Assembly (NCBI GenBank): GCA_054661495.1
Contig: BAAFSQ010000129.1
Span: 1-28,001 of the forward strand
Length of the DNA stretch: 28,001 bases
From: Zygophlyctis sp. KS116
Lineage: Eukaryota; Fungi; Chytridiomycota
Direction: 5' to 3'
In this document: piece by piece, positions 3,954 through 26,592 of the stretch
Numbering within the stretch: position 1 is the stretch's first letter
How the letters are laid out: the number at the start of each line of letters is the position of its first letter
The notes under the pieces: generated by a model
Told to the model about the DNA's origin: nothing
Seen by the model: the letters and a program-made list of their open reading frames with translations, nothing else
Databases searched by the model: none
Made by a program: the position numbers and the translations under genes

Positions 3954-6900
3954 TTAGTCTAATTTTCTTCTTTGGTAGATCAATGCAACTTTTGGGGACA
4001 AGAGATTTACATTAATCTTGTCATATCTCTCACTTGCTTTGATGAATGGGAATTTTAAGTTTGTTGCTTGATCAAAGATTGTATGTTCTTGAGTTTCTGT
4101 AAGATCATGATTGATGGGATTTGCTATTAGAGAACCTAACAAGTCCGATCTTAGTCTTTGAATCTCTCCTAGCTGTTTTAAATGAATCTGCTTGAATTCA
4201 CTTAATTCATTTGCTAATAGTGTATCTTGAACTAAAGAATTCAATTGTTCAGTTGAACTGAAATTTGAAATAAGGGTATCTTTGTCCTTGCTTGTTGTTT
4301 TATTTTCTCTGTCTTTGATTATCTTGTTTCGAAGTGCATCAATCTCTTTTTTAAGCGTATCGTTGGAGTTTTGTAGTTTTTCAATCTCGTTCTGATATGA
4401 TGCATTTAGTTTAGTATCTTTGGTAGCTTTTTCGAAGAGCAATTGATGGGATGAAGATAAATTGTTAGTTTTAGATAAAAGTTGGTTCACCATATCCAAA
4501 AGATCTTTAATTTCTTCATCTGAAAGATTGAGAGTGGCTTCCAAATGTTTAATCATTGTTTCACTGTGGGCTTGATCATGTTTGGCCTGGTTTACTTGTA
4601 AATTTAAACAATTTATCTCTAGTTGAAGCTGTTTTAATTCTTGCTGGTAAGATTCTGCTTGAATGTTGTAATGTTTTTTAAGCTGCTTATAAGATTCGTC
4701 AAGTTTATCTTTTTCAGTAGTTAATTGCAAAACTGTGTTTTCAAGTTTCCTAATTTCTTCCTTTGATTGCTTCATTCTGATTTCCTGTTGAATAATCATA
4801 GTCTCTGCCGCTGCATGAACTTCCTTTTCTATCGTGAATTTTTTCAGTTCTAACTTTAGTTTATCGATATCGATAGCATAGCATTCATTACAGTTTTGAA
4901 GACGTTCGATTTCTCCTCGCAACAGTTCAGTCTGAGATCTCTCTTTTGCTGTTAGATTATTCATGTTGGAATCTCGCTCCTGTTTTACGTTTTTGAGTTC
5001 TAAACACAATCGATCAATTTCTTTGATGTTTTCTGAATTGGATACTTGAATCTTTTGAAATTCTAATTGAAAATTCTCGTTCATTTCCTTTTCTTTTCTG
5101 CTTTGGATCAATTCCAGACGCATGTTTTCCAGATCTTGTCTATACTTTTCGTTTGTAACCAATAGGGTATCAATCTCTTTGCGATTAGATAATGTCGCGC
5201 TGGACTGTTCATCTTTTAAGTCATGCAAGACTTTCTCAATTTGGCTCTTTTCGACTTCCGACTCATTTAGCCTATTTTGAAGCTGCGCCAACTCCAAACT
5301 TAATGAAGATTCCTTTCCTTCGATCGCATTTTGCATCTCCTTACGTAAGTTATCAATTTCTATTATTTGTCTTTCATTATTTATTGATAGCTTTTGAATT
5401 TCGTTTCGGTTAGCTTCTGCTAGAGCGCTTTCATGCATCCATTTATCTTGAAGTTGCCGATTTGAAATAGTCACATTTTTTATTTCAGCCCTTAATTCCT
5501 GTACAAGATTTTGATGATCTTGATTTTCCAAATTCGAAAGATCTAGAGAGTTTTGCAGATCTATAACCATGGAAGCCATATCTGCATTTGTTTTTTTTGC
5601 GTCTGTATTATTTTTTCCCGCTTCTGTTAACCTATTCATATTGGCTAGAAGACTTTCGATTTCCTTTTTATATTCACATTTAACACTTTCTTTGTCTTGA
5701 ATCAAATCATTGATTTTTTTATCAAACTCAAGTGAATCCTGATTATACTGGGCCGTTATTTCCATATTGCTGTTTTTAAGCTGAATAATTTTTGTCCTGC
5801 ATTCATTTACTTGATTTGATAAATCAGACATGTTGTAACTCAAAATCTCCTTTTCCTCCAAAGCTCTTACAAGATCTGACTCTAGCTGATCATTTGTTTG
5901 TAAGTATTTTTCTAGCTCCTCTTTCAGATGTATGATTTCATTTTTGGCTAGTCGCAAAGTACCGCCTTGAGCTGAAGCTAAATCTGATAGATTAGATTCA
6001 CTTTTAACCGTGATAAGCGATTCTTGAAATTCAGAAACCTTTTTAGCCAATTCATCTTTTTCTTGGATTAAATCTTCTCTGACAATCTGTTCTTTTTCGA
6101 TTTGATGCTCCAAAAATTGAATTTTAGCCAAATATTCTGGAAATTGATGCAAACTAGAGGTGTTTTCAGTCTGTGTTTGACTGTTTTGTCTTACAATTGG
6201 TGGATTCATTTGTAAGTAGTCAGAAGTTGTCGTTAGTTTATCTGCAGAGTAAAATGAAGTATCCATAGTAAAATTAGAATGTTTATCTGGAAATGAAAAG
6301 CTACCAGGACCATTAGAGTCTATTAATATTTCATCTTCATCTTGACAAATTTGACTATCACTACCATCAATTGAATCTTTTTCGATATCACTTATATAAT
6401 CTGGAATTTCAGGAATCTCTGATATTTCCCTTAAAGGAATCCCCAATCTTTCAACTGACATGCCGTCATCTTCCCTGACTCCTTTATTATCAAAAATCTA
6501 GAATTACTTTCATAGTGCCATTACCTGTGATCTAATATCGCTTGTATTTTCTGTATTAAAACTGACAATATCAGATAGTTCATCATCAGAAAAAACATTT
6601 GTATTTTGAGCTGATAATATCTTGATAGTAGGAAAATTAAAATAATCCTGGGGTACTCTTCCAAAACAATCTCTAGAATCAATTTTAGCGCCACCGTTGA
6701 GTATTAAATCAATCATTTCTTGATTCTTTTCAATCGTGGCATAATGTAACGGCGATCTTTAAAAGTCAGTTTTCATGAGACCTTTGTACCTCTTTTGAGA
6801 ATCTTCTACATTGACATTAATCCCATAGTCCAATAAACATTTGAGAATTGAAATCCCTTTGTATAGAATCACGTAATGTATCAAGTATTTTCCAGACTTT

Positions 6901-7465
6901 TTTGTAAATAACCTGCATGTACCTTGTCCACACTGTTTATATCTTCTCCTCCATTTATAAGAGCTGTGATTGCTGTCAAATTTTGGTTAAAAATAGCAAA
7001 ACTATACGTAAATCATTAAAGGTACTTTAGCGCAGAGTGTCCGAAATCATCTTTTTGATTAGTTTGAACTTTGCATTCAATCAGTAAAAATTCCATAATA
7101 TCCAAATGGCCATTGATTATGGCCTATTTTTAATAATAAGTAAATACAATCATCAATGGATTTCTTCCTTTAGCGTCTTTTAGTTCGAGATCAGCCCATG
7201 TCTTCCTTTTCGGACATTCATCAAAAGTAGTCGTTAGCTCTCGAACGATTGTCAAAGATCCTAATTCTACTGCATAATGAAAAGAAGAGAACCCATATTT
7301 TGAATTCAACTTGTTAACATCTTCCTTGTATAGACTCTTTACTTTTCTATTATCACCAGTGAATATTGCTTTTTCCATTGAATTTAAATATTTTGGATTC
7401 ACCGGCTCTAATCGTTTGCATTGACCGATATCTACTATTTCACTATTTTTAGTATCGAAGCTCAT
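3954..7465 (-). CDS. Ankyrin-repeat protein with long C-terminal coiled coil
   Basis: Ankyrin motifs (GFSSFHYAVELG, GRNPLMIAIINGH, GHSALNFA, RSPLHYA). Five introns of 24-33 nt join them in frame to the 835 aa E/K/L/Q-rich heptad ORF 3954-6461. Confidence 0.85.
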
Positions 7466-7491
7466 CAGGAAAGTCGCTTTTGAGACCGCTG

Positions 7492-7499
7492 TGACGTCA
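7492..7499. promoter_or_regulatory. CRE/ATF palindrome TGACGTCA in a 54 bp divergent promoter
   Basis: Perfect TGACGTCA between ATG 7465(-) and ATG 7520(+). Confidence 0.4.
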
Positions 7500-7519
7500 T
7501 TCTACTCTGATAAAGATTG

Positions 7520-8957
7520 ATGGAGCTTCCAAAGTCTCGAGAAGCATATTTACAGGAATACTTTGATGAATATGTTATTCTTTGTGATCAGAAAGGTCTA
7601 CAAGTTTTATTGCCAATCAGAAAGGCATTGGAAGAATCTATAGCTTCAAGGTAATATCTTTATTAACTCAATCAAAGAGTAACTCCAGATCAATTTATTT
7701 TAAATGGAAATGCACCCGAAAGAAGAACGTTTAGACTCGAAGATGATTATGTAGAGTCAATATTTCTGCCAATGATTGGGATTTCTTTTCTAAGAGAAAT
7801 AGATCTATCGTTTAATGAATTTGGAGATAAAGGGGCTAAATTACTTGCTAGATTAATCCAAGAAGATAAATATTTGGAAATCTTGAATTTACAATCTAAT
7901 AATATCGGGGAATCGGGTTCTGAAGCACTATGTAAAGCTCTACAACTCAATGAAAGAATCAACAACTTTAATATTTCCAATAATCCTATTGGTGATGTTG
8001 GCGGAATGGAATTTGCAAGAATGTTACAAGTAAAGTAAAACATAATTTAATACTAGGTAAATAGTACTATTACACATCTTGGAATGTCAGGCTGTGGATT
8101 AAAGGCAACATCTTCAATTGCATTATGGACAGTTGTAAAAAATAATGAGGCTTTAACTCATTTTGATATCTCAAATAATATGTCAAATCTTAATAGTTTA
8201 ACTCAATCAGTCATAAATGATATAATGTTACACTTATCAAGAGCTATTACTGGTCATACAACTCTAAAGTACTTGAATTTATCTAGAATGAATATCACAG
8301 ATTGGTCTACATGTGATTATTTTGCAAATGCACTTGGTGAATGCTCTGCTTTAGAAACTTTAGATTTAACAGCGTAATTTACCTATTCTAAAACTTAGAA
8401 ATAAAATTTCTAGAGATGGAGGTGTTGCAATCTTTAAAGCTTTAGCTAAACATACATCTATTTCAACCCTTATTTTAACTCGTTGTTCTATTCAAGATGA
8501 AGGTGCTTATGCTGTAAATGAGTTTCTTCTTGTAAATACAAGTCTTAAAAAGTAATTTATTTAGACTAAGAATCAGATTATATTTGGATTATAACAAGAT
8601 CACATCTAAAGGACTCATTGATATTGCTTTGGCTTTAAATGGAAATTATTCTGTAGAATTTATTGCTCTTTGGGGTAACCAATGGGATAAATTAGCTTGC
8701 CAGGTACATTTTCAGTATATAACTTTGAAAAGGCTTTTGCACCTCTGATTGGTGGACCAATTTATTCTGTTTCTATTGATGATGATCTTAAACTTCCAGT
8801 ATTACCACGCAATACTGCACTTTTCGCATTTGAAAATTCTGATACTGATAATATAATCGTTCGTAAAAGAAAAGGGAAATCTCGACTTCGTCGGAATGGA
8901 ACGGATGTTACATTTTACACGACTGAAGGAGTCTTGAACGTTGCAGAGTCACATTGA
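7520..8957 (+). CDS. Ribonuclease-inhibitor-type leucine-rich-repeat protein, LRRC34-like
   Basis: Repeats IDLSFNEFGDKGA, LNLQSNNIGESG, FNISNNPIGDVGGMEFARMLQVN, LYLDYNKITSKG and the C-terminal ALWGNQW. Five introns of 25-29 nt, first at 7651-7677. LRRC34 assignment is from remembered similarity. Confidence 0.8.
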
Positions 8958-9016
8958 ACCCTAAAAGTTGAAAATAAAATTTTTGTTTCCCGTTTTCGCT
9001 TGTTTAAAAATTGATC

Positions 9017-9718
9017 ATGAATCGAAATAGATCCTATTCTCTCCCTGGATACCAATTTTCCCATTCAGATAATCCTCTGCTCTCACTCTGGGCATCAATG
9101 TCTAGACCCCCGATGCATTCATCGTCATTAGAGTTATCTCCCTTTCATGAAGACACTACTTCTAACCTCTGGACAATGGAAGATGAAAGTGCGTATCCAA
9201 CTCCCCTGGACAAAAGTGACGATCCTTTTCTGCCTGAAAAAACTATCGCCCATCCCGATCATGAGTTTGATCAAGAAATTGTAAAGTCTTCTTCGCTTTT
9301 TGAATCACTGCTGGTTGCGAACATCAATGGGTCTCAGATCAATGTACAAAAAGATGAGATAAGTAGTGGGAGACATCGAAGCTTTAGTCATTCATGTGCT
9401 ATTCCAAGGACATTTAATGGATCAGAAAAAACGATTCAGTGTCCATTTTGTGATAAGATGTTTTATAAAAAGTACAATCTCAAATCTCATCTAGTGTCGC
9501 ATTCTAGTAAGTCATAATGTTATCATTAATTTTTAGAGGAAAGACCTTTTGTATGTCAAGTTTGTGATTCTGCTTTTGCTCGGAAACATGATCTTCAAAG
9601 GCACTTACGATCTCTTCATGGGTTATTGCAAACTTACAAGTGTAAAAAATGTGATCAAATTTTTTCTAGATTTGATGCTTTGAAAAGGCATGTTCTTCAG
9701 CAATGTGAATCAGTATAG
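9017..9718 (+). CDS. C2H2 zinc-finger transcription factor (three fingers, Crz1-like finger array)
   Basis: CPFCDKMFYKKYNLKSHLVSH, then a 30 nt intron, then KERPFVCQVCDSAFARKHDLQRHLRSLH and YKCKKCDQIFSRFDALKRH. Ser-rich N-terminus. Confidence 0.85.
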
Positions 9719-9894
9719 TCTCTGTCCCTATAGTTTTTAATACTTGTGAAATACTAATAGCTAATAAATAAAATTCTTTTTGAATTCTTTTTTCTCTACG
9801 ACTCTCAATTATGGATATCATTACTTAAAGTAATAGGCGACAGTAAAATCACAAAGTAGAATGTATTTTGGTTTTGTCTAGCAAAATAGCATTA

Positions 9895-11409
9895 TCATTG
9901 GGTATCTTTTTCATTTTCTGACTGATCCTGCGATCCAGAAACATCGTTAAGTGCACTTTTAATAATATCGTCTCCTTTTTCTTCCATAGCATCGACTGTT
10001 AATGATTCAGCTTCAGAGTCTTTTGGAAAATATATGATAGATTTCTTTCCTATATCTAAAACATTCTGTGCATTTCCAATCCTTCTTTGTTTCACAGCGA
10101 TAAGATTTTTCTTTGTGTAATCAAAGACTTTGAATTTCTTTTCAAGAATCTCATACTCTGGAGGCAGAGCCTCGCCAGTATTAGATATCCTCACACCCGT
10201 ACTTTTCGTATGGTTAGTAATGGGATTGTCCTCTAGTAATAATTCCTCAAGTTCATGCTGCGCATCAAAGTTAACTTTCTTCGACTAATGATTAACAATA
10301 AGAATATTTACATCTGGTATAAAAGGCGGTTTGATTTGCCTTGATTCTAGAGAATGCCAATCCAATCCAGTAAAAATAGAATGTTCTTTGTATTTTTTTG
10401 GCACTCCTTCACCTTGGGTTCCAAGTCTCTGCTTTACTGTCCGTTGTAAAAGCTAAAAATGAGATAATTGAAGCAAACCCGATGTATAAAATCAATGCAC
10501 TCAGCACTTTGAGGGGTCTCTTTTGGAACTTTTGGAAACGAAACTTCTTCACTTGTAATTGACTTTACAAGAAGTTCATGGTTTTTGGCTCTAAATGGCC
10601 GCTATTAATTTAAAATGGAGTTAAAAATTACTTTTCCAAAAAGAAGCTCATAAAAAGTTACGCCAAGACTCCAATAATCCACTTCAGGTCCATAGTTTTT
10701 AGAAAATATTTCAGGGGCTAAAGAAATTAATAATAAAGATATTTACCGATATAAGCAAGACTTCCTGCAAAAGCTTTTAGTGGCACCCCGGGTCGAGCTT
10801 TGACTGCCACATTGAAATCTGTCAAACTGACATGCCCATCCGATGATAGTAATACTAAATTTTAGTTACTTCAAAAATACAATTATCAGGTTTTATGTCC
10901 CGATGAACAATATTCTTATCATGCAAGTATTCAAGTCCAGAGCCGATTTCTGCGGCATAAAATATGATTTGAGGAACAGTAAATGTGCCAGTATCAAGTA
11001 AATGAAAACGCATGTCACCACCGAGCATCAAATCGAGAACCATGAAGAGATTGTCATCATCTTGAAATGCATATCTTAAATTGCTATATATTATATTAGA
11101 TAATCATACCAAATAAAAGCGTGGCTTAATTCCTCTAGAATTCTTCTTTCTTGTATAATATTACCAACCGCCTTCATCTTGATACATTTTGCTTTATTTA
11201 TGTATTTCAATGCAAACATAAGTTTAGATCCTTTATGCTCCGCCACTCTAACCTATGGTTGTAAGATAACGCCAATACCTTTCCGAATGCTCCTTTCCCT
11301 ACTGAGCGAAGTAAAGAAAAATGACTCAGGTCAACTATAAATTTATGGATACATTAATGATACCTTCTTGTGTGAAATCAATATCCTCTGAGCAGCAAAA
11401 GCAGCCCAT
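9895..11409 (-). CDS. AGC-group Ser/Thr kinase, YANK/STK32 family
   Basis: MGCFCC acylation-type N-terminus, [34 protein letters not shown], family-typical DFN (LTDFNVA), APE, and C-terminal [17 protein letters not shown]. Eight introns of 26-30 nt. Confidence 0.9.
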
Positions 11410-11613
11410 ATTGAAAGAATCGGGGATTTCGCGTCGTCTGACACGTCGACTTTGCGTGTTGAGCCAGTGGCATGGCCCAATCTAAAGTCCGAAAAAAGAA
11501 AATATCGATACGAATCTCAAAAGATTGTCCATTGAAATCAAACCACATTTGAGATGTCATATTTAGTCTTGTGATCTACTCGGGGCGCTAGTGGCGTTTT
11601 GTTTAGAAAAGAA

Positions 11614-12279
11614 ATGGGTAATCCAATCGAAACATCACATCTTGATACAGATGCGGTTGATGATGAGACTTTAAGATGCATCAAGAATGTGAAAGATCTC
11701 AGCCCCCAAAATATTAAAATATTTCTTGAACATTTGTTTGGAGGAATGTCATTGATTGCCAAAGAAACAGTGGTTGACATATTATGGGCTTCAATGACAT
11801 TAAGAGAACAACATCTGTTTGATATGCCGACTGCAGGTCGTAGACTTACGGATGAAGAAATACATCGCAATTTTAGTTCATCAGAGCTAAATGTGATTCC
11901 CAGAAGAGTGGTGAGAGATCTGCATCAAGTAGATCCTTTAAGCCGATCTATGAGAACACGCACAGGATTAACAACACAGATATGGCCTAGAATAGGATAC
12001 TCTAGGGCAGTAGAAGGGAACTCTAATGATGCGAATCCCCCGGAAATTGGAATAGAACTATTCCAATCTGATAATGTTCGAAGGCGAAATCTGTCAAATA
12101 GTACACCAAACGAACCTGGGGAAATCGGCGACCATATATTGACCTTGCTTATGTACTTTTATTCAATAGCTAAAATTAGGGATGTTGTAATGAGAGCTGA
12201 ACTAAATTCATCTAGAGGAGGGGCAGGATCAACTCAAGAAGAAGATTCCGAACATACTACCCGTCGATCACGCCAGTGA
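11614..12279 (+). CDS. Intronless hypothetical protein (221 aa), no family recognised
   Basis: Long open frame with first ATG at 11614, preceded by a CG-rich promoter-like stretch. Ends 13 bp from the convergent oligopeptidase stop. Confidence 0.6.
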   Translation: MGNPIETSHLDTDAVDDETLRCIKNVKDLSPQNIKIFLEHLFGGMSLIAKETVVDILWASMTLREQHLFDMPTAGRRLTDEEIHRNFSSSELNVIPRRVVRDLHQVDPLSRSMRTRTGLTTQIWPRIGYSRAVEGNSNDANPPEIGIELFQSDNVRRRNLSNSTPNEPGEIGDHILTLLMYFYSIAKIRDVVMRAELNSSRGGAGSTQEEDSEHTTRRSRQ

Positions 12280-12292
12280 TAAGTCCGATTTT

Positions 12293-14728
12293 TTATTTTC
12301 GATTCATAATACGATCAATTATAAAAGCATAATCAGCAGCTACTTCTTTGTAATATGAATATCTTCCAGATGCTCCGAAATGACCAGATCCCATTTTACA
12401 ATCTAATAAAATGTTTGATGAGTCTGACATTAGACTTCTCAGTTTTGCACACCATTTTGCAGGCTCTAGATCATTAAAAACAAAAAATATACCCCAATAT
12501 GCAACACGAGGATCATTAAGTCCTGCTTTAATAAGCAAATGAGGAAACTAAAACATGAGTTTAAGGAAAATACCTTTTCAGATCCCCTTAAATTATCATA
12601 TGGCGAATATGATAAAATATAGTCAAAGAAGTCCTTCTCATTAGGATTACCCCATTCTTCATACTTTCTAATTAGTGGCTAAACAAAATACTTCATTAAT
12701 AGTCAGAGGTATACTAGGATCCATCACTAAATTAAATTAGTAAATATTTAAGTACTTGTGTTAGTTACATCAACAAAAGGCACACCTGCAACTGCAGCAG
12801 CGGCAATATCAGGCTTTAAATTCAAGGTAGCCCCTATCAAGAGACCGCCTGCAGATCTCCCTTCAATCGCCATATGTTCATGGCTTGTAACTTTTGCTTT
12901 TACCAACTCTTCTGCGCACGCTATAAAGTCATAAAAAGTATTCTTCTTATTCTTGAACTTGCCGGCTTCATACCTAAACTTAAAAACCAATTATAAAAAT
13001 ACCATCCACGCCCGCAATCGCCTCCTCCTCTTATATGCGCTATTGCATACACGAACCCACGATCTACTAAACTAAATCTGTAATAGCTAAAAGAAGGATC
13101 GATTGAGATCCCATAGCTTCCATATCCATAAAGTAGGCAAGGATTAGAGCCATTCTTCTTATAGAGAGATTTCTTATATATAATTGAAATGGGTATTTTG
13201 TCTGGTACCGGTGTATTGAAAGGAGCGTCGACTTCAGTTCCAGCCTTCATTGGAGCATATATTCGCTCCATAGCATATTCAGAAGGATCGAATCCCCCAC
13301 AAACATTCTAAAGAAATTGCAAACATAATTAACATACCGTTTTCTTTAAAATAGATTGAGAAAATGTATCCATATCAACTTCCCAGACTTCCTTTGCGGT
13401 TATCATTGATTGATAATTTAAGCGGATAATATTTGAGTCATAATCTTGCTCAACACCAAGTGCAGGTTCAACAAAATACAATGGTTGATGAAATTCCATA
13501 TATCTCCCCGAATTAATATCAATTACACTATTTTTGTCAACTTTGAGAACATAAATGTGTTTCAGAGCATCATAACACTCATATACCACCAGATAATCTC
13601 TAAAAGGACAAATATCAATTAAATTCTTCAAAGGATTGTATGGTAAAATTTCCTTCCAGTTTTCTTGTTCTGTTTGATTCTAATCATGAATAGAAAATAA
13701 TAATTACCAGAGGACAAGCACAGAGCTTATTATTCAAATATTTCCCACCTCCATTTGTTAATATTAAAAACTGTGTTCCTAAATGCTCTACATCATATTT
13801 ATGATTGAGCTCTCTTTTTTGAAATAATTTTGGATCAGAATTTGACTCTTGTCCATCCAAAACCCAAATTTCACTAGTCAAACCAGACGCAGCAGTTATA
13901 AAGATATATTTTCCTGAAGCTGATTTCTTAATCCCAACAATATATTGTTCATCTTTTTCATGAAAAACAACCATATCCTCCTGACAATCCCTTTAAAATA
14001 AAAACAAATAATATACAAAAGAACATGTCTAAAAACCTTATCACTTCTATGAATATGATCTAAAGTAGTATAATATATAGCCTTTGAATCTTGTGTCCAC
14101 TCAAAATCACCACAAGTTTTATGAATTTGATCAGACAACAATTCTCCACTTTCCAAATCTTTAAAGTAAATTGTAAAAAACTCTGAACCATCTGTATCTA
14201 TTGAATAACAAAGTATTTTATGATTTGGACTAACTTGAATTTTCCCTAAATCCATATATTCTAAATCCATTGAATTCTGATCCAACAATACTTGTTCTAC
14301 ATCATCTTTTTTCCTTTGATAGACTGGATATTGTGCATCCTTGATTGTCCTACTATAATAAGAAAATAATCCTTTTTGAACTGGAACAGAAAAATCATTT
14401 TCTTGAATTCTCCCTACAATTTCCTTGTAAATCAAATCCGTCAGCGACTTATTTGGCTCTAAATGAGCTTGGGCAGAATATTCATTTTCACTCTAAACTT
14501 TTTAAAATATTCATTTACCTCTAAATATTGAATTATTTCTAGTCTTTTAGAGCTATTTTGGTCTTTTAACCAATGATAATCATCTTTAATAATATTTCCA
14601 AAGTATGAGTGTTGATGTTCAACTGTTTTTGCTACAGGCACTTTCATTCTAGACCAGAATTTATAATTTTTTAAAGTATTAAACATTCTGCTCAATAATA
14701 CGCCTGATAATGGCTTGATAAGCCTCAT
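12293..14728 (-). CDS. Oligopeptidase B / protease II (S9A family), intact copy
   Basis: DDYHWLKD N-terminus, beta-propeller region, LLYGYGSYG, HIRGGG, catalytic GRSAGG, EYEEWGNP, NDPRV and GHFG. Eight introns of 26-30 nt. Basic, acid-free N-terminal extension resembles a mitochondrial presequence. True start could be a downstream Met. Confidence 0.92.
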
Positions 14729-15024
14729 TCAATTTAATCTTGTATTACTTGCATTCAGCTTTGCTTTTAAAGCTTGATCTCTAAAAGACTCATACATGTC
14801 GTCTGTAGTGTATTTAGATAGACACTTGTTTAATGTATCTTTTTCCTTTAAACATGCAAAATAAACTGTAATTGTACGATGGCTAGTACAATTTACTAAT
14901 TCCTGCATTAATTCTGAACAATGTAGTCTAGCATTTTTCTTAAATTTCTCTCTAATAAAATCCTAATATTAATAATAGAGACTAGTACTTCTTCTCCAGA
15001 ACTTAAAACTGTAATGATTGTCAT
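14729..15024 (-). CDS. CMC1: CMC1-like twin CX9C cytochrome c oxidase biogenesis protein (copy 1)
   Basis: MTIITVLSSGEE, a 26 nt intron, then DFIREKFKKNARLHCSELMQELVNCTSHRTITVYFACLKEKDTLNKCLSKYTT: two exact CX9C motifs with Cmc1-like spacing. Absent from the ORF track. Confidence 0.8.
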
Positions 15025-15181
15025 TGCGTGTGACCTCGACACTCTTTCTAATTCGTACAAGATTTTATCTAGTATCTATGCTTTCTAGTGTCTAGTAGTG
15101 TTCTATAAGTAGTAGTGTTTAGTAGTTTATAATAGATTTTTTAAATATAATAAAGTATCGCTGATTAACTACTTAAGAAAT

Positions 15182-16971
15182 ATGAGAAATGATAAAATAC
15201 TAAATTCAGCAATTATAGAGGATGCTACAGAATTATATCCTCTACAAGATACTAGTATTTCTTGTGAAAATGAGGATTCAGTTCTAAAATCTAAAGAGAA
15301 CATTATTTTATGCAAGAACAAAAGAGAGTTGTTTAGATTTAAAACTCAACCTCAAATAGATGGGAATTTGTCATTGGGGACATTGTTTTATCTACAAAGA
15401 CATGTATTTATGATATTCACAGACGTGATTCTGGTTTTGTTGCTCAGTAATTCTATTTGGACTCTGTATTCAACTGCATTATCTATAGATATATCAATTT
15501 TATCATATCTTGGAGTGTATTGTCCAATATATTTCTCAATTATAAAATGTTTTTGGCATTTAGATGGTAAATTTATTCAATTAAAATATAGCATCATATG
15601 GACATGATAATATACTGTATTATGTAATTAATGGTACAAGGTTGGTTTTGTATTATGGGATATGTTATACTGGTCCATCAGTGTATAATTCTAATGGAGC
15701 TAATCTATTTGCGTTTTCAGTCTTTCTTTCTGCTCAACGATTTCTTGTATTGGTTTTTAAATGTATGTTTTATACTACTAAAAGCAGGTTTTATGGCTTT
15801 TAAATTTAAGAAATTATCATCAAGAAATGTAGTGTTGATGATAACTATGGATTTAATTCCATTATCATTTTATGTTGCTATTGCTGTTTTACAATCAATT
15901 TTAAAACATAGGATGGATTTAATATATCTAATATGGGCATTTGGGATTGTTGCTGATTTTATTACATTGATTGTGATTGATGGTGTAAATGTTTGGACTA
16001 GAACAAATATTAAGCCAGATGATTTAAGTCTAATAGTTTCTAAAAAGACGTATACAGAACAATTAAGTTCAGATCCTTTTGATCGTATGAAAATAGTGAC
16101 TTTAACGGCTTTTGCATGGGGTGGAAGTCAATTGTTTCCAAGTCGTAATGGAGTTGGAATGCCAGATTTATTTGTTTCTATTGATTATAATAATTCAGAT
16201 TTTCTAGTTGGAATGATGGGCATTTTAATAATCTATTTTTTGATGCGATGTTATGTTGCTGCAAGTACTAATATATGTATTTTCAAGGATGATGCAAAGG
16301 ATACAATGTCTAAAAGAGTAAATATTCTAATTGGATTACAAAAACTATTACATGTGTTTATTCATGCAATTTTATTTTTGGTATTGAATTTATTAAAGAG
16401 ATGCATTAAAGATATATGGGATAACTTTAACAGGTTTCCTGGAACAGGATTTTACTTTGATTTTGGAAAGATTACAGGATATCAATTCTCTTTATGGCGA
16501 TCTCTACCATATCCAACACAAGACACGTTTACTAATTTTCTAAGACCTTGGGTGGCTAATCAAACCATGGCTAGTACACCTCCCCCTGGATTGTATTCTA
16601 TTCCTTCTTATATGTCTGGAACATCTCTATTACACGTTCCTCTTATTCAACCAGATGTTGTATTCTGTGTCGCATTAGGACTTTTCAACTTGTTTTTACT
16701 GTTTATACATTGGACAAATCAAGGGATTGAAATTTATCAAAGTAGTCAAGATCCGGTGGATGAATCAATGCCTTTATTTAAATCAATTTTCTTTACAAAC
16801 AATAGCATCATAAAGATAATGAATGCAGCGATTTTCTTTGCAATAGCCCCAATAGACGTAAGATATCTAAATATTCTCTGCAAGATGATCGTCATTACAT
16901 CGACTACGTTTATACAAGTGTTATGGGATGATTCACAAAGAATCTCTGGCTACCAAAGATCTTTTACCTGA
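15182..16971 (+). CDS. Polytopic membrane protein, possibly LtrA (low-temperature requirement A)-like (copy 1)
   Basis: ORFs 15182 and 15631 are joined through two 25 nt introns and an intermediate exon (ASYGHDNILYY...). Many hydrophobic helices. IFTDVILV, YGHD and FDRMKIVTL loosely match LtrA motifs, so the family call is tentative. Confidence 0.65.
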
Positions 16972-17205
16972 TTGGCTCCAAATGTATAATCCCTGATTTT
17001 TAAATAAATATTATCATACTACAATTGTCATTCCTCCTCCAATGATTCCGTAAGCTATCGAAAAGGTTTTTCTAGTGAGCGATCGTATTTCCTTTTTATG
17101 CTTTTCTATTTCCTCTTTTGACATTCCAGCCATCGGATCTTTAAAATGCATGAACCGCCTACTATTTTTCAATGGCGCCAAGCTCTTCAAACTCTTTAAT
17201 AGCAT
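16933..17205 (-). CDS. Small single-TM protein with mitochondrial-type presequence (copy 1); weak resemblance to COX8/COX7c
   Basis: Basic presequence MLLKSLKSLAPLKNSRRF, then HFKD...RKT and a hydrophobic segment completed after intron 16993-17019 (GLYIWSQSGKRSLVARDSL*). The 3' end overlaps the convergent membrane gene. Confidence 0.6.
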
Positions 17206-17248
17206 TGGATTTGCGTTTAATTCTTCCGAAGCCTGCGCGTTCTTCTAG
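17206..17248. promoter_or_regulatory. 43 bp divergent promoter with GCGCGTT and TTGCGTTT motifs (repeated at 22605-22647)
   Basis: Entire space between ATG 17205(-) and ATG 17249(+). CGCGT at 17236-17240. Confidence 0.5.
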
Positions 17249-18314
17249 ATGGAATCTAAAGGGACAATACAGATCTATTGCCGAGTCCGACCGACCAAAC
17301 CTAATGTTCGAATCTCTGATGATAGATACTGGATAAAGAATCCTGAAATTATTGATGAGAATGATCCAGATTCAGTACCAAAACTGGGATTTTTCATTCC
17401 AAAAGATCTTGGCTCAGGCATGATTAACAATCAACGAGAAAATTATGAATTCAAGTTTGATCGTGTATTTGGCATGAACACTCAACAAGGTAATATCTTT
17501 ATTTTAAACATGTAGAGGAAATTTTTGGTAAATTACTAGAAATAATATATAGATGTTGTTGCTAAACCTGTGATTTCTAGGTAATTTCAAGGATCAATAT
17601 GATCTAAACAAGTCTCATTAGATAGCGTGATTGAAGGTTATAATGGGACAATTTTTGCATATGGACAGGTAATCAATTATACAAAAATAACCCATTAGAC
17701 AGGATCCGGAAAAACATTTACAATCACTGGAGGGGCAGAAAAGTATTCTGATAGAGGTATAATACCACGATCTATACAGCACATGTTTAAGGAAAAAAGC
17801 AAGGTAAATTTAATAATTGTAAATTCAAGTCTGATCGGCATTTCGAATTTGCAGTTTCTTATCTAGAAATATATAATGAAATTGGTTATGATTTGTTGGA
17901 TAATTCTAGAGAAGCAAAAAAACTGGAAGATTTACCGTAAATATTCTAATTTTTTAATTATTAGGAGGATTACGCTACAAGAAGATGCGGAAGATCTCAT
18001 TCATTTGAAAAATTTAAGTGTGATTCCAGTTTCAAGTGAAGAAGATGCTCTAAATCTCTTATTTGTTGGTGATACAAATCGTATGATTGCAGAAACGCCA
18101 TCAAATCCTTCATCTTCTAGAAGTCACTGCATTTTCATTATTTCAGTTTCCAGTAGAAGTAATAATGGTGATACTATTCGTAAAAGTAAATTACATCTTG
18201 TAGATCTTGCTGGGTAAGACATTCTAGGCAAATTCATATACTAGTTCTGAAAGAGTAGCTCAATCTGCCATACATGTCCAGGAATGTCGAGCAGCAAAAG
18301 AAATGATGCAATAA
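17249..18314 (+). pseudogene. 3'-truncated KIF6-like kinesin fused to insert-derived tail
   Basis: Identical to 22648 onward up to DLAGSERVA. It then reads into the insert (QSAIHVQECRAAKEMMQ*) and stops at 18312-18314, lacking the rest of the motor and the stalk. Confidence 0.85.
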
Positions 18315-18963
18315 TGATTGCTAAAACTTCTGCTTCCAAAAACACAACTGCCCGAATGATGTCCATACATCCAGGGATGTGGTGCAATCCCATATGAACA
18401 GCATAGCCGAAAAGAAGCAATCCCACCAAATGACCGGAACGATGCCAGTTCAAGTTTGGCTTTTGCTCATGGACGAATTTGACTTGGCATGGTACAAGAG
18501 CGACCATCATTGCACGTTTCAAGCTCGTGATTTTGTACTTTTCCAGCAATGGACGACCTCCAAAAACCAACACAGCATTGCTACATTCCCACAACGCCGT
18601 GATGGCATAAAAAAGAATCGAAGGCAGAAGTTGTCCACCAAAGAGTGGGACCAATAAGAGGGTCTTGTAAATGGCCACGCCAGCGACGCAGGAAGCGGCA
18701 ACTTGCCAACGAGCGACAGACCACCATCTGGATTGGTTAATACCCCAGTCCTGAATATACCAGCCAACCAAGACAGTGATGATATTCATCAACAGATAGG
18801 GAGCGGCTGCCGGGTAACCAACTGCGGCTGGCACGATAGTTCCGGCGAGGATGATAGCGATATATACCAGTTTCAGAAAAGGTCGGGCGTCTTGTTGAGG
18901 CGAGGAGGAAGGAGAAGAGGAATCCGGTGAGGATACAATGAGAGGTTGTTGGTCCTGCGACAT
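18241..18963 (-). pseudogene. 5' part of an intronless polytopic membrane-protein gene carried by the insert (possibly MBOAT/wax-synthase-like), truncated at the junction
   Basis: 234 codons lie within the insert. The last residues ELLFQN* and the stop come from the antisense strand of the host kinesin (18241-18261). Several TM segments; family guess is weak. Confidence 0.6.
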
Positions 18964-19691
18964 TTTGTAGGGTTAGGGTAAAAATTATATAAAGCAGTGA
19001 AAAATCTCCGTCTTCTTTTCTTTTCTAAAAAATGACGTCAACGTCCTCACCCACAACAAGTGAAAGCAGTACTTACTCGATTCATGACCCGCCTGGATAC
19101 ATCAAGCCTTCTTTGCAAGACATGCTCCTCACCGACATTGACGCTGAAGAGTTGTTGACAATCGCAAAGCGACTTGGAGAGGACTACTTGGGGCCAGCAG
19201 CTGAATTCCCAGGTTCCTTTCCGGTTGATGGAAAAATTCATGGAAATAACAAACGTCTCATGGTTTCTCTCTCTTGTTGCTGGGAAGGAAAGAACTCGAA
19301 AGCCATCAACATCATCTTCCTCATCGACACTGGCTCCCCAAATACTTTTTTGTCAGACAAAGCTATGGAGGCACTGGTTGGAAAGCCTGGATGCAATATT
19401 GGCACGATGATGGGTGTCAGGATTCATACCAAGAAAGTTATCGAATGTCATTTATCACCTCATGATAAACACTTTGCGGATGTGAATGTGCTTGGTGCCG
19501 ATTTCTTGGTGGAAAATGGTTTGACATTGAAAGCAAATTATAGCAACAAAATTTGTACTTTGCTGGTTGAGGAAAATGAATAAAACATCATTCCTTTCTA
19601 TATTTACAATGCTTTATATTTCTGATGCTTGGACCATTGAAACTCAAATGTAAAAAAATGGTATCATTCGGTGCTCTATCTATACTACTCA
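18262..19691. other. 1,430 bp unique, compositionally foreign segment between the two duplicate copies
   Basis: Visibly GC-richer (roughly 45-50% in its ORFs vs roughly one third in host genes, estimated by eye). No tiny introns, two divergent ORFs, no terminal repeats or transposase. Confidence 0.9.
19032..19583 (+). CDS. Stand-alone retropepsin-like (clan AA) single-domain aspartic protease
   Basis: Catalytic motif IFLIDTGSPNTFLS plus downstream NVLGADFL (hydrophobic-hydrophobic-Gly-x-Asp). Complete ORF with aaaaATG context and AT-rich 3' flank. No gag, RT or integrase nearby. Confidence 0.8.
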   Translation: MTSTSSPTTSESSTYSIHDPPGYIKPSLQDMLLTDIDAEELLTIAKRLGEDYLGPAAEFPGSFPVDGKIHGNNKRLMVSLSCCWEGKNSKAINIIFLIDTGSPNTFLSDKAMEALVGKPGCNIGTMMGVRIHTKKVIECHLSPHDKHFADVNVLGADFLVENGLTLKANYSNKICTLLVEENE

Positions 19692-20127
19692 TGTTCTACA
19701 TCATCTTTTTTCCTTTGATAGACTGGATATTGTGCATCCTTGATTGTCCTACTATAATAAGAAAATAATCCTTTTTGAACTGGAACAGAAAAATCATTTT
19801 CTTGAATTCTCCCTACAATTTCCTTGTAAATCAAATCCGTCAGCGACTTATTTGGCTCTAAATGAGCTTGGGCAGAATATTCATTTTCACTCTAAACTTT
19901 TTAAAATATTCATTTACCTCTAAATATTGAATTATTTCTAGTCTTTTAGAGCTATTTTGGTCTTTTAACCAATGATAATCATCTTTAATAATATTTCCAA
20001 AGTATGAGTGTTGATGTTCAACTGTTTTTGCTACAGGCACTTTCATTCTAGACCAGAATTTATAATTTTTTAAAGTATTAAACATTCTGCTCAATAATAC
20101 GCCTGATAATGGCTTGATAAGCCTCAT
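19685..20127 (-). pseudogene. 3'-truncated duplicate of oligopeptidase B (N-terminal fragment only)
   Basis: Identical to 14728 downward as far as RKKDDVE. It then enters the insert (HE*) and stops at TAG 19687-19685. Confidence 0.85.
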
Positions 20128-20423
20128 TCAATTTAATCTTGTATTACTTGCATTCAGCTTTGCTTTTAAAGCTTGATCTCTAAAAGACTCATACATGTCG
20201 TCTGTAGTGTATTTAGATAGACACTTGTTTAATGTATCTTTTTCCTTTAAACATGCAAAATAAACTGTAATTGTACGATGGCTAGTACAATTTACTAATT
20301 CCTGCATTAATTCTGAACAATGTAGTCTAGCATTTTTCTTAAATTTCTCTCTAATAAAATCCTAATATTAATAATAGAGACTAGTACTTCTTCTCCAGAA
20401 CTTAAAACTGTAATGATTGTCAT
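20128..20423 (-). CDS. CMC1: CMC1-like twin CX9C protein (copy 2)
   Basis: Duplicate of 14729-15024. Confidence 0.75.
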
Positions 20424-20580
20424 TGCGTGTGACCTCGACACTCTTTCTAATTCGTACAAGATTTTATCTAGTATCTATGCTTTCTAGTGTCTAGTAGTGT
20501 TCTATAAGTAGTAGTGTTTAGTAGTTTATAATAGATTTTTTAAATATAATAAAGTATCGCTGATTAACTACTTAAGAAAT

Positions 20581-22370
20581 ATGAGAAATGATAAAATACT
20601 AAATTCAGCAATTATAGAGGATGCTACAGAATTATATCCTCTACAAGATACTAGTATTTCTTGTGAAAATGAGGATTCAGTTCTAAAATCTAAAGAGAAC
20701 ATTATTTTATGCAAGAACAAAAGAGAGTTGTTTAGATTTAAAACTCAACCTCAAATAGATGGGAATTTGTCATTGGGGACATTGTTTTATCTACAAAGAC
20801 ATGTATTTATGATATTCACAGACGTGATTCTGGTTTTGTTGCTCAGTAATTCTATTTGGACTCTGTATTCAACTGCATTATCTATAGATATATCAATTTT
20901 ATCATATCTTGGAGTGTATTGTCCAATATATTTCTCAATTATAAAATGTTTTTGGCATTTAGATGGTAAATTTATTCAATTAAAATATAGCATCATATGG
21001 ACATGATAATATACTGTATTATGTAATTAATGGTACAAGGTTGGTTTTGTATTATGGGATATGTTATACTGGTCCATCAGTGTATAATTCTAATGGAGCT
21101 AATCTATTTGCGTTTTCAGTCTTTCTTTCTGCTCAACGATTTCTTGTATTGGTTTTTAAATGTATGTTTTATACTACTAAAAGCAGGTTTTATGGCTTTT
21201 AAATTTAAGAAATTATCATCAAGAAATGTAGTGTTGATGATAACTATGGATTTAATTCCATTATCATTTTATGTTGCTATTGCTGTTTTACAATCAATTT
21301 TAAAACATAGGATGGATTTAATATATCTAATATGGGCATTTGGGATTGTTGCTGATTTTATTACATTGATTGTGATTGATGGTGTAAATGTTTGGACTAG
21401 AACAAATATTAAGCCAGATGATTTAAGTCTAATAGTTTCTAAAAAGACGTATACAGAACAATTAAGTTCAGATCCTTTTGATCGTATGAAAATAGTGACT
21501 TTAACGGCTTTTGCATGGGGTGGAAGTCAATTGTTTCCAAGTCGTAATGGAGTTGGAATGCCAGATTTATTTGTTTCTATTGATTATAATAATTCAGATT
21601 TTCTAGTTGGAATGATGGGCATTTTAATAATCTATTTTTTGATGCGATGTTATGTTGCTGCAAGTACTAATATATGTATTTTCAAGGATGATGCAAAGGA
21701 TACAATGTCTAAAAGAGTAAATATTCTAATTGGATTACAAAAACTATTACATGTGTTTATTCATGCAATTTTATTTTTGGTATTGAATTTATTAAAGAGA
21801 TGCATTAAAGATATATGGGATAACTTTAACAGGTTTCCTGGAACAGGATTTTACTTTGATTTTGGAAAGATTACAGGATATCAATTCTCTTTATGGCGAT
21901 CTCTACCATATCCAACACAAGACACGTTTACTAATTTTCTAAGACCTTGGGTGGCTAATCAAACCATGGCTAGTACACCTCCCCCTGGATTGTATTCTAT
22001 TCCTTCTTATATGTCTGGAACATCTCTATTACACGTTCCTCTTATTCAACCAGATGTTGTATTCTGTGTCGCATTAGGACTTTTCAACTTGTTTTTACTG
22101 TTTATACATTGGACAAATCAAGGGATTGAAATTTATCAAAGTAGTCAAGATCCGGTGGATGAATCAATGCCTTTATTTAAATCAATTTTCTTTACAAACA
22201 ATAGCATCATAAAGATAATGAATGCAGCGATTTTCTTTGCAATAGCCCCAATAGACGTAAGATATCTAAATATTCTCTGCAAGATGATCGTCATTACATC
22301 GACTACGTTTATACAAGTGTTATGGGATGATTCACAAAGAATCTCTGGCTACCAAAGATCTTTTACCTGA
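20581..22370 (+). CDS. Polytopic membrane protein, possibly LtrA-like (copy 2)
   Basis: Duplicate of 15182-16971 with identical ORF translations. Confidence 0.65.
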
Positions 22371-22604
22371 TTGGCTCCAAATGTATAATCCCTGATTTTT
22401 AAATAAATATTATCATACTACAATTGTCATTCCTCCTCCAATGATTCCGTAAGCTATCGAAAAGGTTTTTCTAGTGAGCGATCGTATTTCCTTTTTATGC
22501 TTTTCTATTTCCTCTTTTGACATTCCAGCCATCGGATCTTTAAAATGCATGAACCGCCTACTATTTTTCAATGGCGCCAAGCTCTTCAAACTCTTTAATA
22601 GCAT
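22332..22604 (-). CDS. Small mitochondrial-type single-TM protein (copy 2)
   Basis: Duplicate of 16933-17205. Confidence 0.6.
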
Positions 22605-22647
22605 TGGATTTGCGTTTAATTCTTCCGAAGCCTGCGCGTTCTTCTAG

Positions 22648-25310
22648 ATGGAATCTAAAGGGACAATACAGATCTATTGCCGAGTCCGACCGACCAAACC
22701 TAATGTTCGAATCTCTGATGATAGATACTGGATAAAGAATCCTGAAATTATTGATGAGAATGATCCAGATTCAGTACCAAAACTGGGATTTTTCATTCCA
22801 AAAGATCTTGGCTCAGGCATGATTAACAATCAACGAGAAAATTATGAATTCAAGTTTGATCGTGTATTTGGCATGAACACTCAACAAGGTAATATCTTTA
22901 TTTTAAACATGTAGAGGAAATTTTTGGTAAATTACTAGAAATAATATATAGATGTTGTTGCTAAACCTGTGATTTCTAGGTAATTTCAAGGATCAATATG
23001 ATCTAAACAAGTCTCATTAGATAGCGTGATTGAAGGTTATAATGGGACAATTTTTGCATATGGACAGGTAATCAATTATACAAAAATAACCCATTAGACA
23101 GGATCCGGAAAAACATTTACAATCACTGGAGGGGCAGAAAAGTATTCTGATAGAGGTATAATACCACGATCTATACAGCACATGTTTAAGGAAAAAAGCA
23201 AGGTAAATTTAATAATTGTAAATTCAAGTCTGATCGGCATTTCGAATTTGCAGTTTCTTATCTAGAAATATATAATGAAATTGGTTATGATTTGTTGGAT
23301 AATTCTAGAGAAGCAAAAAAACTGGAAGATTTACCGTAAATATTCTAATTTTTTAATTATTAGGAGGATTACGCTACAAGAAGATGCGGAAGATCTCATT
23401 CATTTGAAAAATTTAAGTGTGATTCCAGTTTCAAGTGAAGAAGATGCTCTAAATCTCTTATTTGTTGGTGATACAAATCGTATGATTGCAGAAACGCCAT
23501 CAAATCCTTCATCTTCTAGAAGTCACTGCATTTTCATTATTTCAGTTTCCAGTAGAAGTAATAATGGTGATACTATTCGTAAAAGTAAATTACATCTTGT
23601 AGATCTTGCTGGGTAAGACATTCTAGGCAAATTCATATACTAGTTCTGAAAGAGTAGCTCGGACCGGCATTGCAGGAAATCTATTGAAAGAAGCCAAATA
23701 TATTAATCTTTCATTACACTACTTAGAACAGGTTATTGTCGCACTGCACGAAAAAGCTCTTGGTAAACGAACTCATGTACCGTATCGAAACTCTACAATG
23801 ACTTCAGTTTTGAGAGATTCGTTAGGAGGAAACTGCAAAACTACAATGATTGCTACATGTGCAGTTGAAGATTCACTAATTGATGTATCTAGTCTCAAAT
23901 AATGAATTAATTCTAGGAATCAATATCAACATGTCGATTTGCGCAGAGAGTCGCTTTGATATCTAATAAAGCAGTTCTAAATGAAGAAATGGACCCGTAT
24001 CTCACAATCGCACGTCTCCAGAAAGAGATCACCCGATTAAAAACTGAACTGGCTATTGCAAGGGGGGAAACTGGTGATTCTAATGAAGAGTTGCCAGATT
24101 ATGAATTAGAAAGGTATATTGTCATCAATTTATTTCAAATAGAATCAAACAGATGGTCGATGATTTCCTCTCAAATCAATCAAATGAACTATGTTTTAGT
24201 GATTTCAGAAAAATTACTGCCGCATTTAATATTCTTCGAGTATTTTACAGCTTTTAATTTAATAGGAATTGATTCATAAAAGGGGATCAGGTGCAATCTC
24301 TTCGATCCCTTCACAAAAATTGGTAGAGCTGAAAGAAGCCACAAATAATCAAAATCCAACTAAAGAGGACTCCAAAAATCTAAGCCAAATACTAGATCAC
24401 AGAGATAATGAGATTAGTAAGTTAATAGAATGTGAAAATAACATTTTAGAAATTCTTGTAAGCATGGTGAATCAGCTCAAGTTAAAGCTTGAAGCTTCAG
24501 GGGAAACAAATACTGTAAAAGCAAACCATATAATTCTTAGGAAAAAACGATCACTCAAATCGAAGCAGAGACAACTGCATCTCCAGCGTCACAAAAACCT
24601 ATATCAACTAGCCAAACGCTTGAATCAATTTCAAAGCTGAAATCCAGTATCCCTAAACTAACTACAGAAAAAGCCAAAGCCTTTGAAATATTCAAGAACG
24701 GTTATCCATCTGGAGCTTGGATTGATGGCCAAAAAGCCTTGCTAAAGAGCAAATACGGTGAAGCTAAAGCTCTTGGAGAAGTAGCACAGGCTAATAGAAA
24801 CGATATTAGTATTTTACAATATATTAATCTCTTAGAGCATTTAAAAGAACTGATTGGAAATTCCGACGCAAATGAAAGTGACAAATCAGAGTGGAGAGAG
24901 CTAATATCCAAAAAAGTAGCAGAGTAAAAATATTTAAATTGAAAAATAGATACAAAATATCATATGGGAAACTAAAAGAATTGAAGATGGAGATTGAACA
25001 TTTGCAACACTTACTCGAACATGCAAGAACACGCTTAACTAGAGATTTTGAACACTGGTATGTCCACGTCTATCTAGAAACCCCAAATACCACAGACAGC
25101 AAATTAACCCAAAGCATTTCTACAACATCACTCGTTGAAGCTATACAGCCAAATGAGTGTAAAGTTGAAGTCCATACCCGTGCAATTGCAAACGTAAGTT
25201 ACTTTTTTTAAACCAAGGCCACTCCAACAAAGTCAAAAATTCAATCTGATATTGAAGCATTTTATAGATGTCAAAGAGAGCTAAATTCTAGCCTAGCCAA
25301 GAAAAAATAA
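22648..25310 (+). CDS. KIF6: Kinesin-9 family motor, KIF6-like (intact copy)
   Basis: RVRP, P-loop AYGQTGSGKTFTITGG, DRGIIPR, GDTNRMIAETPSNPSSSRSH, DLAGSERV, EAKYINLSLHYLEQVI, HVPYRNS, LRDSLGGN, STCRFAQRV, LKMEIEHLQHLLE and terminal DIEAFY. About 15 introns of 24-45 nt, including 12 nt and 28 nt micro-exons. Confidence 0.9.
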
Positions 25311-25373
25311 TAACATATTTGTAGTTTAGGATCATTTTGATCTTTCCTTGAATTAATCATCATCGGAACTCTG

Positions 25374-26330
25374 ATGAGTCTGACACAAGAAGAGTACCGA
25401 CGCAAGTTGGAGGAATATAAGAAAAGCAAGGAAATTCAAAAGTATTGACTTTATTATTGTAAACAATAGGCTCAAGTTAGCGTCTGATAAAGAGAATAAG
25501 AAGCTGAGCGCCAACCGTGGATGTCCGAAACAGGAGAAAACCATTGTTTCTGGGCAGCTGAATAAGACTGCACGGTTTGATGTAAAGAGGAAATCGGTTG
25601 TTCCTACTAAAAACGCTAAAATCTCTGTACTTAAGCCGACTCAGCAAGAATCTAATTCACGTGATACAGTACTCAATGATACCGTGGCTAATGCTCACAC
25701 TAGCACTGTCTCTGATGCAGTTATGATGACTAATAATTCAAATCAAGAATCAATTATCTCTTTTGATAACTTAACTAAACCTTCTGATTCTAAATGTACA
25801 AGTTGTAATCCAAGTCCTGGTATTGTCAGAGATGTACCGGTCAATGGTCAGAATATTGAATGCGATCAAAAGATTGATATTGAAAAAGTCATTAGTGAAC
25901 CATTGGTTGCGAAGAATGAAATCCTAGATATTGCAAACATGCTTGAATCACTTCAGCTACAAACTCCAGCCAAACATATTTCAACAAAAACACCGAAAGA
26001 AGAAACTAAATCTCTCAATATTAAGATGGCTGGAGATGGAGTATGCATCAATACAGACGGGACATGTTTAACGGTACTGACTCCAGTGAGGGCTTCCCGA
26101 AAAGTTGAAAAAGGTACGTATTTTCTAAATATGAAATTTATAGAATTGGGAGTGAAAAATGTTATAACTCCCGTAAGAAGATCAATAAGAAATGCCCTTA
26201 TGATTCCACAAGATTCGTCAGTTAAAAAACACGACCAGATCCATAATCTACTGAATGATCATGATTTTGCATATGTTCCAAATGATGTAAACTTAAATAT
26301 TTCTAATCATAGGCTTTTAAGGAGAATTAG
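25374..26330 (+). CDS. CKAP2-like microtubule-associated / cell-cycle protein
   Basis: N-terminal EEYRRKLEEYKK, KEN box (DKEN), LTPVRAS and ITPVRRSIR motifs, terminal AYVPNDAF. Three introns (28, 30, 26 nt). Family assignment rests on short motifs only. Confidence 0.6.
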
Positions 26331-26592
26331 CTGTAAAACAGTCGCCAAATATGATTTTGAGAGAACTCTCAAATACAAAACATTTTTAAGCAGCGGACAT
26401 TTCATTGAGCAACAGAAAAATGAGATGTAGTTTTAGGTCACTAGGATCCTTGAACTGATCGATCTTATCTTTGATATTTTCGGACATGATAATCCAACTT
26501 AAAATCACTTCGGTCGGTGATGACCATCCCATCCAATCCAATCGGTCCAGTCAAACAAACGGATTATCTCCGAATCATTCAGTTTACAAATC

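Follow-up and report, generated by a model that had tools for sequence, protein, structure and literature searches.

A transposon tip at the junction of a probable 4-kb tandem duplication in the chytrid Zygophlyctis sp. KS116

Background

Tandem duplications that form at stalled replication forks and carry templated or captured filler DNA are of kilobase scale, with 0–1 nt of microhomology and short fillers at their junctions. Transposons are found at tandem duplication junctions as well: in maize this is the case for Ac, where alternative transposition and re-replication are involved (PMC3744419, PMC4270019), and in human tumours L1-associated tandem duplications have been described for which the joining of a free element end to a sister-chromatid break has been proposed (Rodriguez-Martin et al. 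2020, PMC7058536). Here, we analyse a stretch of 28,001 nucleotides from the chytrid Zygophlyctis sp. KS116 (assembly GCA_054661495.1, contig BAAFSQ010000129.1, positions 1 to 28,001 of the forward strand), hereafter the window, in which two identical copies of a 4-kb gene-bearing region enclose a 1.4-kb spacer that ends 2 nt beyond the tip of a resident transposon family. In our interpretation, to which we assign a probability of roughly 0.6, the locus is a real and heritable 3,969-bp tandem duplication whose junction is filled by a native transposon fragment and which arose from one aberrant, one-ended event. That the repeat-spacer-repeat structure as such is real we consider likely.

Results

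Geometry of the repeat

All positions are window coordinates. The two repeat copies are designated A1 and A2, the spacer X, and the left and right flanks L and R; J1 is the junction leading from copy A1 into X (18261/18262), and J2 is the junction leading from X into copy A2. The structure consists of the following parts.

14293–18261, no strand: copy A1 of the direct repeat (window self-comparison and assembly search).
18261–18262, no strand: junction J1, where A1 meets X at the broken inner end of the latter; 1 nt of microhomology (the native scaffold L057, see below, diverges left of 18261).
19654–19689, plus strand: terminal inverted repeat (TIR) tip of a transposon family, ending ...CTATACTACT (36 genome matches, control 0).
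19690–19691, no strand: junction J2, the dinucleotide CA as a filler that separates the tip from A2 (window sequence).
19692–23660, no strand: copy A2 of the direct repeat (window self-comparison; Logan contig L065, 3,963 nt, corresponds to exactly that span).

Self-comparison of the window at an offset of 5,399 revealed that A1 and A2 are identical over 3,969 bp, with 0 differences in a single unbroken run, which bears out the geometry described in the initial annotation. A perfect repeat of 4 kb is impossible by chance. Between both copies lies X (18262–19691; 1,430 bp), with a GC content of 0.44 (0.47 in its left part), compared with 0.31 in A and 0.35 in both flanks. In the full assembly (12.7 Mb, 1,175 contigs), A occurs twice only, both times on this contig (C129).

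These data raise a key question: does the contig represent a true duplication, or a loop that was unrolled during assembly? Five contigs (C223, C71, C475, C585 and C194, recorded as L018, L019, L023, L027 and L054) start exactly 77 nt before the end of the transposon tip, which indicates a k = 77 graph assembly (SPAdes-like, in our reading). In such a graph, a 4-kb repeat that is held twice is one edge traversed twice, so the 100% identity of A1 and A2 is built in and says nothing about their age. The caveat of the initial annotation that an assembler might have unrolled a loop was therefore fair. The two possibilities are inseparable from the assembly alone, and the deciding point is the existence of J1 and J2 in DNA. 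As a side observation, any perfect repeat longer than 77 nt in the KS116 genome is identical by construction of the graph; 'perfect identity' of such repeats in k-mer graph assemblies should be treated with caution, being uninformative about age.

The spacer ends at the tip of a resident transposon family

The 36-nt tip is present in 36 copies in the KS116 genome (19 forward, 17 reverse), compared with 0 for the reversed control, and the sequence directly past the tip differs in every copy. Two complete elements with an inverted pair of tips were identified: one of 2.6 kb (C11:23217–25794), whose TIRs extend over at least 60 nt, and one of 282 bp (C244:52–333). Both (2/2) are flanked by a fixed 6-bp target duplication (AGCGTA and CATGTC, respectively); the window locus has none. 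By these comparisons, X is identified as the right-hand 1,430 bp of a resident, cargo-carrying TIR transposon, presumably of the cut-and-paste type, with a broken inner end.

Other classes of elements were considered. Polinton/Maverick elements have a 6-bp duplication, long TIRs and 5'-AG...CT-3' ends; this candidate was rejected, PF03175 (pPolB) giving no match above the cut-off. Helitrons were set aside on account of unfitting ends. An origin by LINE-like, target-primed reverse transcription was rejected on the basis of the inverted tip pairs, the fixed 6-bp duplications, the two divergent genes in X and the lack of poly(A); the conserved 3' end, 5' truncation and variable target duplication of a LINE-like insertion are only mimicked at the window locus. 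The many rve (PF00665) matches in the genome belong to long retroelement-like open reading frames (ORFs) on other contigs. A search for the tip in a viral contig collection gave 0 matches and is uninformative.

Two further features of the family can be mentioned. Extra ACT units follow some of the tips (e.g. C7:80356–80361, L021), so that the element might end in an (ACT)n tail of variable length. Just inside another tip (C541:2737–3933, L039), a protein of 398 aa is encoded that looks secreted and has NHL/YD-like repeats, which adds to the variety of the cargo.

Contents of the spacer

X carries two divergent ORFs, at 18241–18963 on the minus strand and at 19032–19583 on the plus strand, which correspond to the following features.

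18262–18963, minus strand: 5' part (~233 codons) of a cargo gene for an MBOAT-like membrane protein, cut at J1 (comparison with the proteins P0001 and P0002 and with scaffold L057).
19032–19583, plus strand: complete 183-aa retropepsin-like ORF (peptidase A2-like, DTG motif; paralogues, homologues and a weak Pfam match to PF13975).

The final 7 codons and the stop of the minus-strand ORF are supplied by A1. Comparison with P0001, a near-identical relative, and with the 410-aa P0002 shows that the part in X corresponds to the first ~233 codons of a membrane protein of ~410 aa bearing an FWRKWSRP...YYPLGG motif. The cargo gene is cut at the inner end of X: a lake-metagenome scaffold from ENA (L057) matches the window from 18724 to 18261 at 99.4% and then continues into the rest of the cargo gene, and its departure from the window at 18261 marks the inner end of X as a break within that gene. 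Beyond the cargo gene, L057 runs into sequence that is multi-copy in the KS116 genome at 92–98%, for example inside the complete element on C11. The minus-strand ORF is single in the KS116 genome, with no paralogue, and the 3' half of the cargo gene was not found in the KS116 assembly. The protein has no Pfam match, and a language-model search provides a lead, and no more than that, towards a relationship with MBOAT. The MBOAT motif, which we take to be RRWH with a catalytic His, has Ser at the latter position in P0001 and P0002, and from its sequence the protein may represent a divergent or inactive acyltransferase family.

The 183-aa ORF has at least 8 paralogues in KS116 with 54–84% amino acid identity, and this gene family adjoins the transposon tip. 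Its 148 homologues come from chytrids and aphelids, and some are named 'Peptidase A2 domain-containing' in their source records. The family is conserved at 50–95% among these groups (Batrachochytrium, Rhizoclosmatium, Amoeboaphelidium and others); a record from the zebra mussel (Dreissena polymorpha) with 78% identity reflects either contamination or transfer.

X was also detected at ≥ 99% identity in the lake metagenomes X4 and X6, in which A was not detected at ≥ 90%, and in the bulk metagenomes X6 and X9 it stands in its native context, extending past 18261 into other sequence. Elements of the X type may thus be present in other lineages as well, through recent spread or horizontal transfer among chytrids. 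Exact-protein look-ups with the chimeric ORF at J1 (240 aa), the chimeric ORFs at J2 (49 and 47 aa) and the 183-aa ORF returned no record, and a homologue search with the 49-aa ORF gave no candidates.

The junctions in independent DNA

The strongest evidence for J1 is an ENA scaffold (L067) from a bulk lake metagenome that belongs to a different study (KAVA23-1). Colinear with the window from 17679 to 18756, it crosses J1 with 583 nt on the A side and 495 nt on the X side, and it carries three private single-nucleotide polymorphisms (SNPs), all of them in A. Since the junction is present in an independent scaffold with SNPs of its own, J1 is real, common to diverged genotypes and not brand new.

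Additional evidence was provided by the Logan contigs of SRR35554702 (run X2), a small 'freshwater metagenome'. One contig of 890 nt corresponds to 18232–19121 without a difference and begins exactly 30 nt (k-1) inside A. The A contig of the same run covers exactly 19692–23660, and the X contig and the R contig both open with the last 30 nt of A, the tail of A being the sole predecessor of X. This run thus displays the same loop topology as the window. Its copy of A differs from that of the window by nine substitutions and a 6-nt deletion, which reflects either another genotype or another choice among variants. In a further run, SRR35555750, one contig ends exactly at 18261. In independent data, J1 is spanned by L067 and the Logan contigs of two runs break at the borders of A; J2 is not spanned.

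The exact J1 pattern gave 0 matches in JGI metagenome contigs, as did a control pattern from the tail of A, so this collection does not contain the locus and is uninformative. The 0 matches of the J2 pattern in prokaryote genome contigs are likewise uninformative.

Recurrence at another tip

A second locus shows a similar arrangement. On contig C7, the same tip is followed by a 6-nt filler, ACTACT, which repeats the tip's own end, and then by 543 bp that perfectly repeat the sequence in front of a 1,394-nt insert. At three further tips analysed by flank search, the flanks were unique, with no long duplication.

Genes interrupted and genes doubled

The genes in and around the repeat are as follows.

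~12748–14728, minus strand: intact oligopeptidase B-like (S9) gene (Pfam Peptidase_S9_N and Peptidase_S9 on exon ORFs).
14729–14908, second copy 20128–20307, minus strand: CMC1 gene, doubled (PF08583 Cmc1 on the called gene of L064/L065, coordinates via alignment).
15182–16971, second copies 20581–22370, plus strand: 141-aa and 446-aa ORFs, doubled (no Pfam match).
17249–18261, plus strand: truncated 5' part of a KIF9-like kinesin gene (Pfam Microtub_bd and Kinesin; spliced translation).
19692–20127, minus strand: truncated 5' fragment of the oligopeptidase gene, ending at the transposon tip, with the 49-aa chimeric ORF at 19685–19834.
22648–26430 (3' limit approximate), plus strand: intact KIF9-like kinesin gene, in A2 and the right flank (Pfam Microtub_bd, Kinesin and KIF9).

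The left border of A, 14293, lies inside the Peptidase_S9_N exon of the minus-strand oligopeptidase gene; the 5' part of the intact gene (14293–14728) is within A1, and the remainder is in the unique left flank. Logan contig L064 is colinear with the window from 5178 to 15791, through the whole of this gene. The right border, 18261, falls in the switch-II region of the plus-strand kinesin, at the first base of the codon that follows ...DLAGSERVA. The truncated kinesin ends after this motif and runs through 17 codons of X to a stop, and in the other copy the motif is unbroken across 23660/23661, from A2 into the right flank. The oligopeptidase and the kinesin therefore each keep one intact and one truncated copy, the three genes enclosed by them are present twice, and no gene is lost, just as initially annotated.

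The switch-II region of the kinesin appears to be split by a 31-nt intron (18214–18244), judging by the DLAGSER motif that its removal restores. Another side observation concerns window positions 14472–15059, a polymorphism hot spot with three haplotypes in three data sets. There are 7 SNPs and 2 indels in 1.5 kb, compared with 1 SNP in 9 kb of the left flank, and part of these variants could be differences between two collapsed copies of A.

Discussion

A one-ended insertion as the preferred interpretation

How could a transposon fragment come to fill the junction of a duplication? In the interpretation that we prefer, a free transposon end with an intact natural tip would have been joined to the chromosome at 14292/14293 with two filler bases. 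The broken inner end, in the MBOAT-like cargo gene, would have been joined at 18261/18262 to another copy of the region, on the sister chromatid or on re-replicated DNA, over 1 nt of microhomology. The outcome would be a one-ended insertion with a giant 'target-site duplication' of ~4 kb. That end joining finished the reaction is suggested by the filler bases next to the tip and by the single nucleotide of microhomology at J1. The position of J2, 2 nt from a natural terminus, argues for a transposon end rather than random DNA, and since the 3' half of the donor's cargo gene is missing from the assembly, capture of an excised element is favoured over copying from a resident template. A is probably physically present twice, and the biochemical steps probably took place in this order.

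Several observations weigh against this interpretation. Outside the KS116 assembly, J2 has no spanning sequence, and the independent support for it is indirect; likewise, there is no single molecule across the whole A-X-A structure. A 12-kb contig of SRR35555750 passes 14293 unbroken, although a short J2 branch into a 36-copy repeat may have been clipped there. The mean contig depths in run X2 are 140 for A, 133 for R and ~257 for X, compared with the 2:1:1 predicted by a duplication; they would fit only with a steep rise of depth with GC (0.31, 0.35 and 0.47) or with uneven coverage, and because they are confounded by GC and, X being entered only from the tail of A, are at odds with flow conservation whatever the model, we hold them to be unreliable rather than refuting. 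Filler bases at the tip suit end joining better than clean strand transfer by a transposase, and no transposase was identified for the family, either by Pfam on the ORFs of its members or in searches with PF03175 and PF00665. Finally, a long duplication is present at only 2 of the ~13 evaluable tips.

Alternative explanations

The alternative that survives best, which we nevertheless regard as unlikely, is a tandem duplication formed by replication, through fork stalling and template switching or through microhomology-mediated break-induced replication. In this reading the insertion would be templated from a transposon elsewhere, no transposase would take part, and the tip at J2 would be a mere coincidence or mark the point where copying ran off a linear template. 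The single nucleotide of microhomology at J1 is in line with such a process, and the fillers at both examined tip junctions (CA, and ACTACT on C7) resemble the products of a polymerase or of end joining. However, two separate loci stop at the same natural tip, which makes coincidence implausible, and the donor copy needed as a template is not in the assembly.

Another question is whether A could be single-copy, the assembler having unrolled a loop from rare chimeric or minority molecules. A k = 77 graph contig necessarily traverses the A edge twice, the depths of A and R in run X2 are about equal, and one run crosses the start of A unbroken. Against these points, J1 occurs in an independent bulk metagenome with SNPs of its own and, at the contig level, in two further runs; J2 falls on a transposon tip, which is found in the same layout at a second locus; and the only predecessor of X in run X2 is the tail of A. 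We therefore consider an artefact quite unlikely.

It is improbable that a 5,399-bp extrachromosomal circle of A and X, possibly released by pop-out recombination, or a mixed population exists alongside an unduplicated chromosome. The graph topology would equal that of a tandem duplication, and such a circle is an expected by-product of recombination between the copies of A; however, it predicts a greater depth of A than of X, the opposite of what is found in run X2, and its persistence across lakes and genotypes would require a replicating episome. Highly improbable is the Campbell-type, single-crossover integration of a circle of host and truly foreign DNA, since, for all its compatible geometry and a cargo that is GC-richer, unique in the genome and found in lake DNA without A, X is part of an element from a resident, 36-copy transposon family, the joining of A to X at a transposon tip is left unexplained and both junctions must already exist. 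There is no recombinase among the X ORFs. Unequal crossing-over between flanking repeats was rejected, there being no copy of X in the L or R flank.

Several proposals of the initial annotation do not hold in the light of these results. X had been called foreign, whereas its 183-aa ORF has paralogues in KS116 and its terminal 36 nt belong to a resident TIR family; a weaker sense of the term survives in the cargo gene, which is unique in the genome and GC-richer, and in the ≥ 99% identity of X in lake DNA lacking A. A transposase-free route of entry is at odds with the position of J2 at an element terminus, which points to a transposon end, and nothing supports the Campbell-type integration that had been put forward. 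The perfect identity of the copies had been taken as a sign of extremely recent origin, yet L067 carries J1 and differs by three SNPs in 583 nt of A, so J1 predates this divergence. The presence of J1 in that diverged scaffold also makes a chimera produced by multiple displacement amplification unlikely.

Implications

If the structure is confirmed, it ties a single transposon end directly to a kilobase-scale tandem duplication within the natural population of an early-branching fungus. A single event would have doubled three genes and left two truncated gene copies, which would explain how mobile cargo genes can insert into the coding exons of a compact genome and leave gene function intact. 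More tentatively, and with considerable doubt, we suggest that a family of cargo-carrying TIR elements of zoosporic fungi might have a second, one-ended mode of insertion, in which a single tip is joined and replication and end joining complete the reaction. Were this so, duplications ranging from tens of bases up to 4 kb would preserve an intact copy of each interrupted gene in a gene-dense genome and create tandem gene duplicates, as a DNA-level counterpart of target-primed insertion. We know of no description of such a mode for eukaryotic class II elements.

Comparison with known systems

The locus resembles the maize Ac duplications (PMC4270019) in having a class II terminus at the junction of a kilobase-scale tandem direct duplication, a fractured element, flanking duplications of variable length from one event and repair by end joining. 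However, the maize events involve two termini, contributed by a pair of nearby elements, and result in the canonical 8-bp target duplication, while the window locus has one tip, a break in the cargo and fillers instead of a 6-bp duplication, with no neighbouring element. Compared with what Ac-type reversed-ends transposition leaves behind, the tip (ending at 19689) is indeed at the junction (A2 starting at 19692), and a second terminus and a canonical target duplication are absent.

The human L1 duplications (PMC7058536) are likewise direct and in tandem, and the element at their junction lacks its 5' part and retains an intact 3' end. They differ in being RNA-mediated (endonuclease and reverse transcriptase), in having a poly(A) tail and in their megabase scale, whereas the KS116 family has inverted terminal repeats and fixed 6-bp duplications in its complete copies.

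The size of the window duplication, its microhomology in the range of 0–1 nt and its short fillers also match duplications formed at stalled forks, from which, however, fillers that stop at a natural transposon tip at more than one locus would not be expected. Thus, the A-X-A structure belongs with the known transposon-associated tandem duplications and, with moderate confidence in the one-ended mechanism, can be distinguished from them by its single tip, by the absence of a canonical short duplication and by the involvement of a DNA transposon rather than a retroelement.

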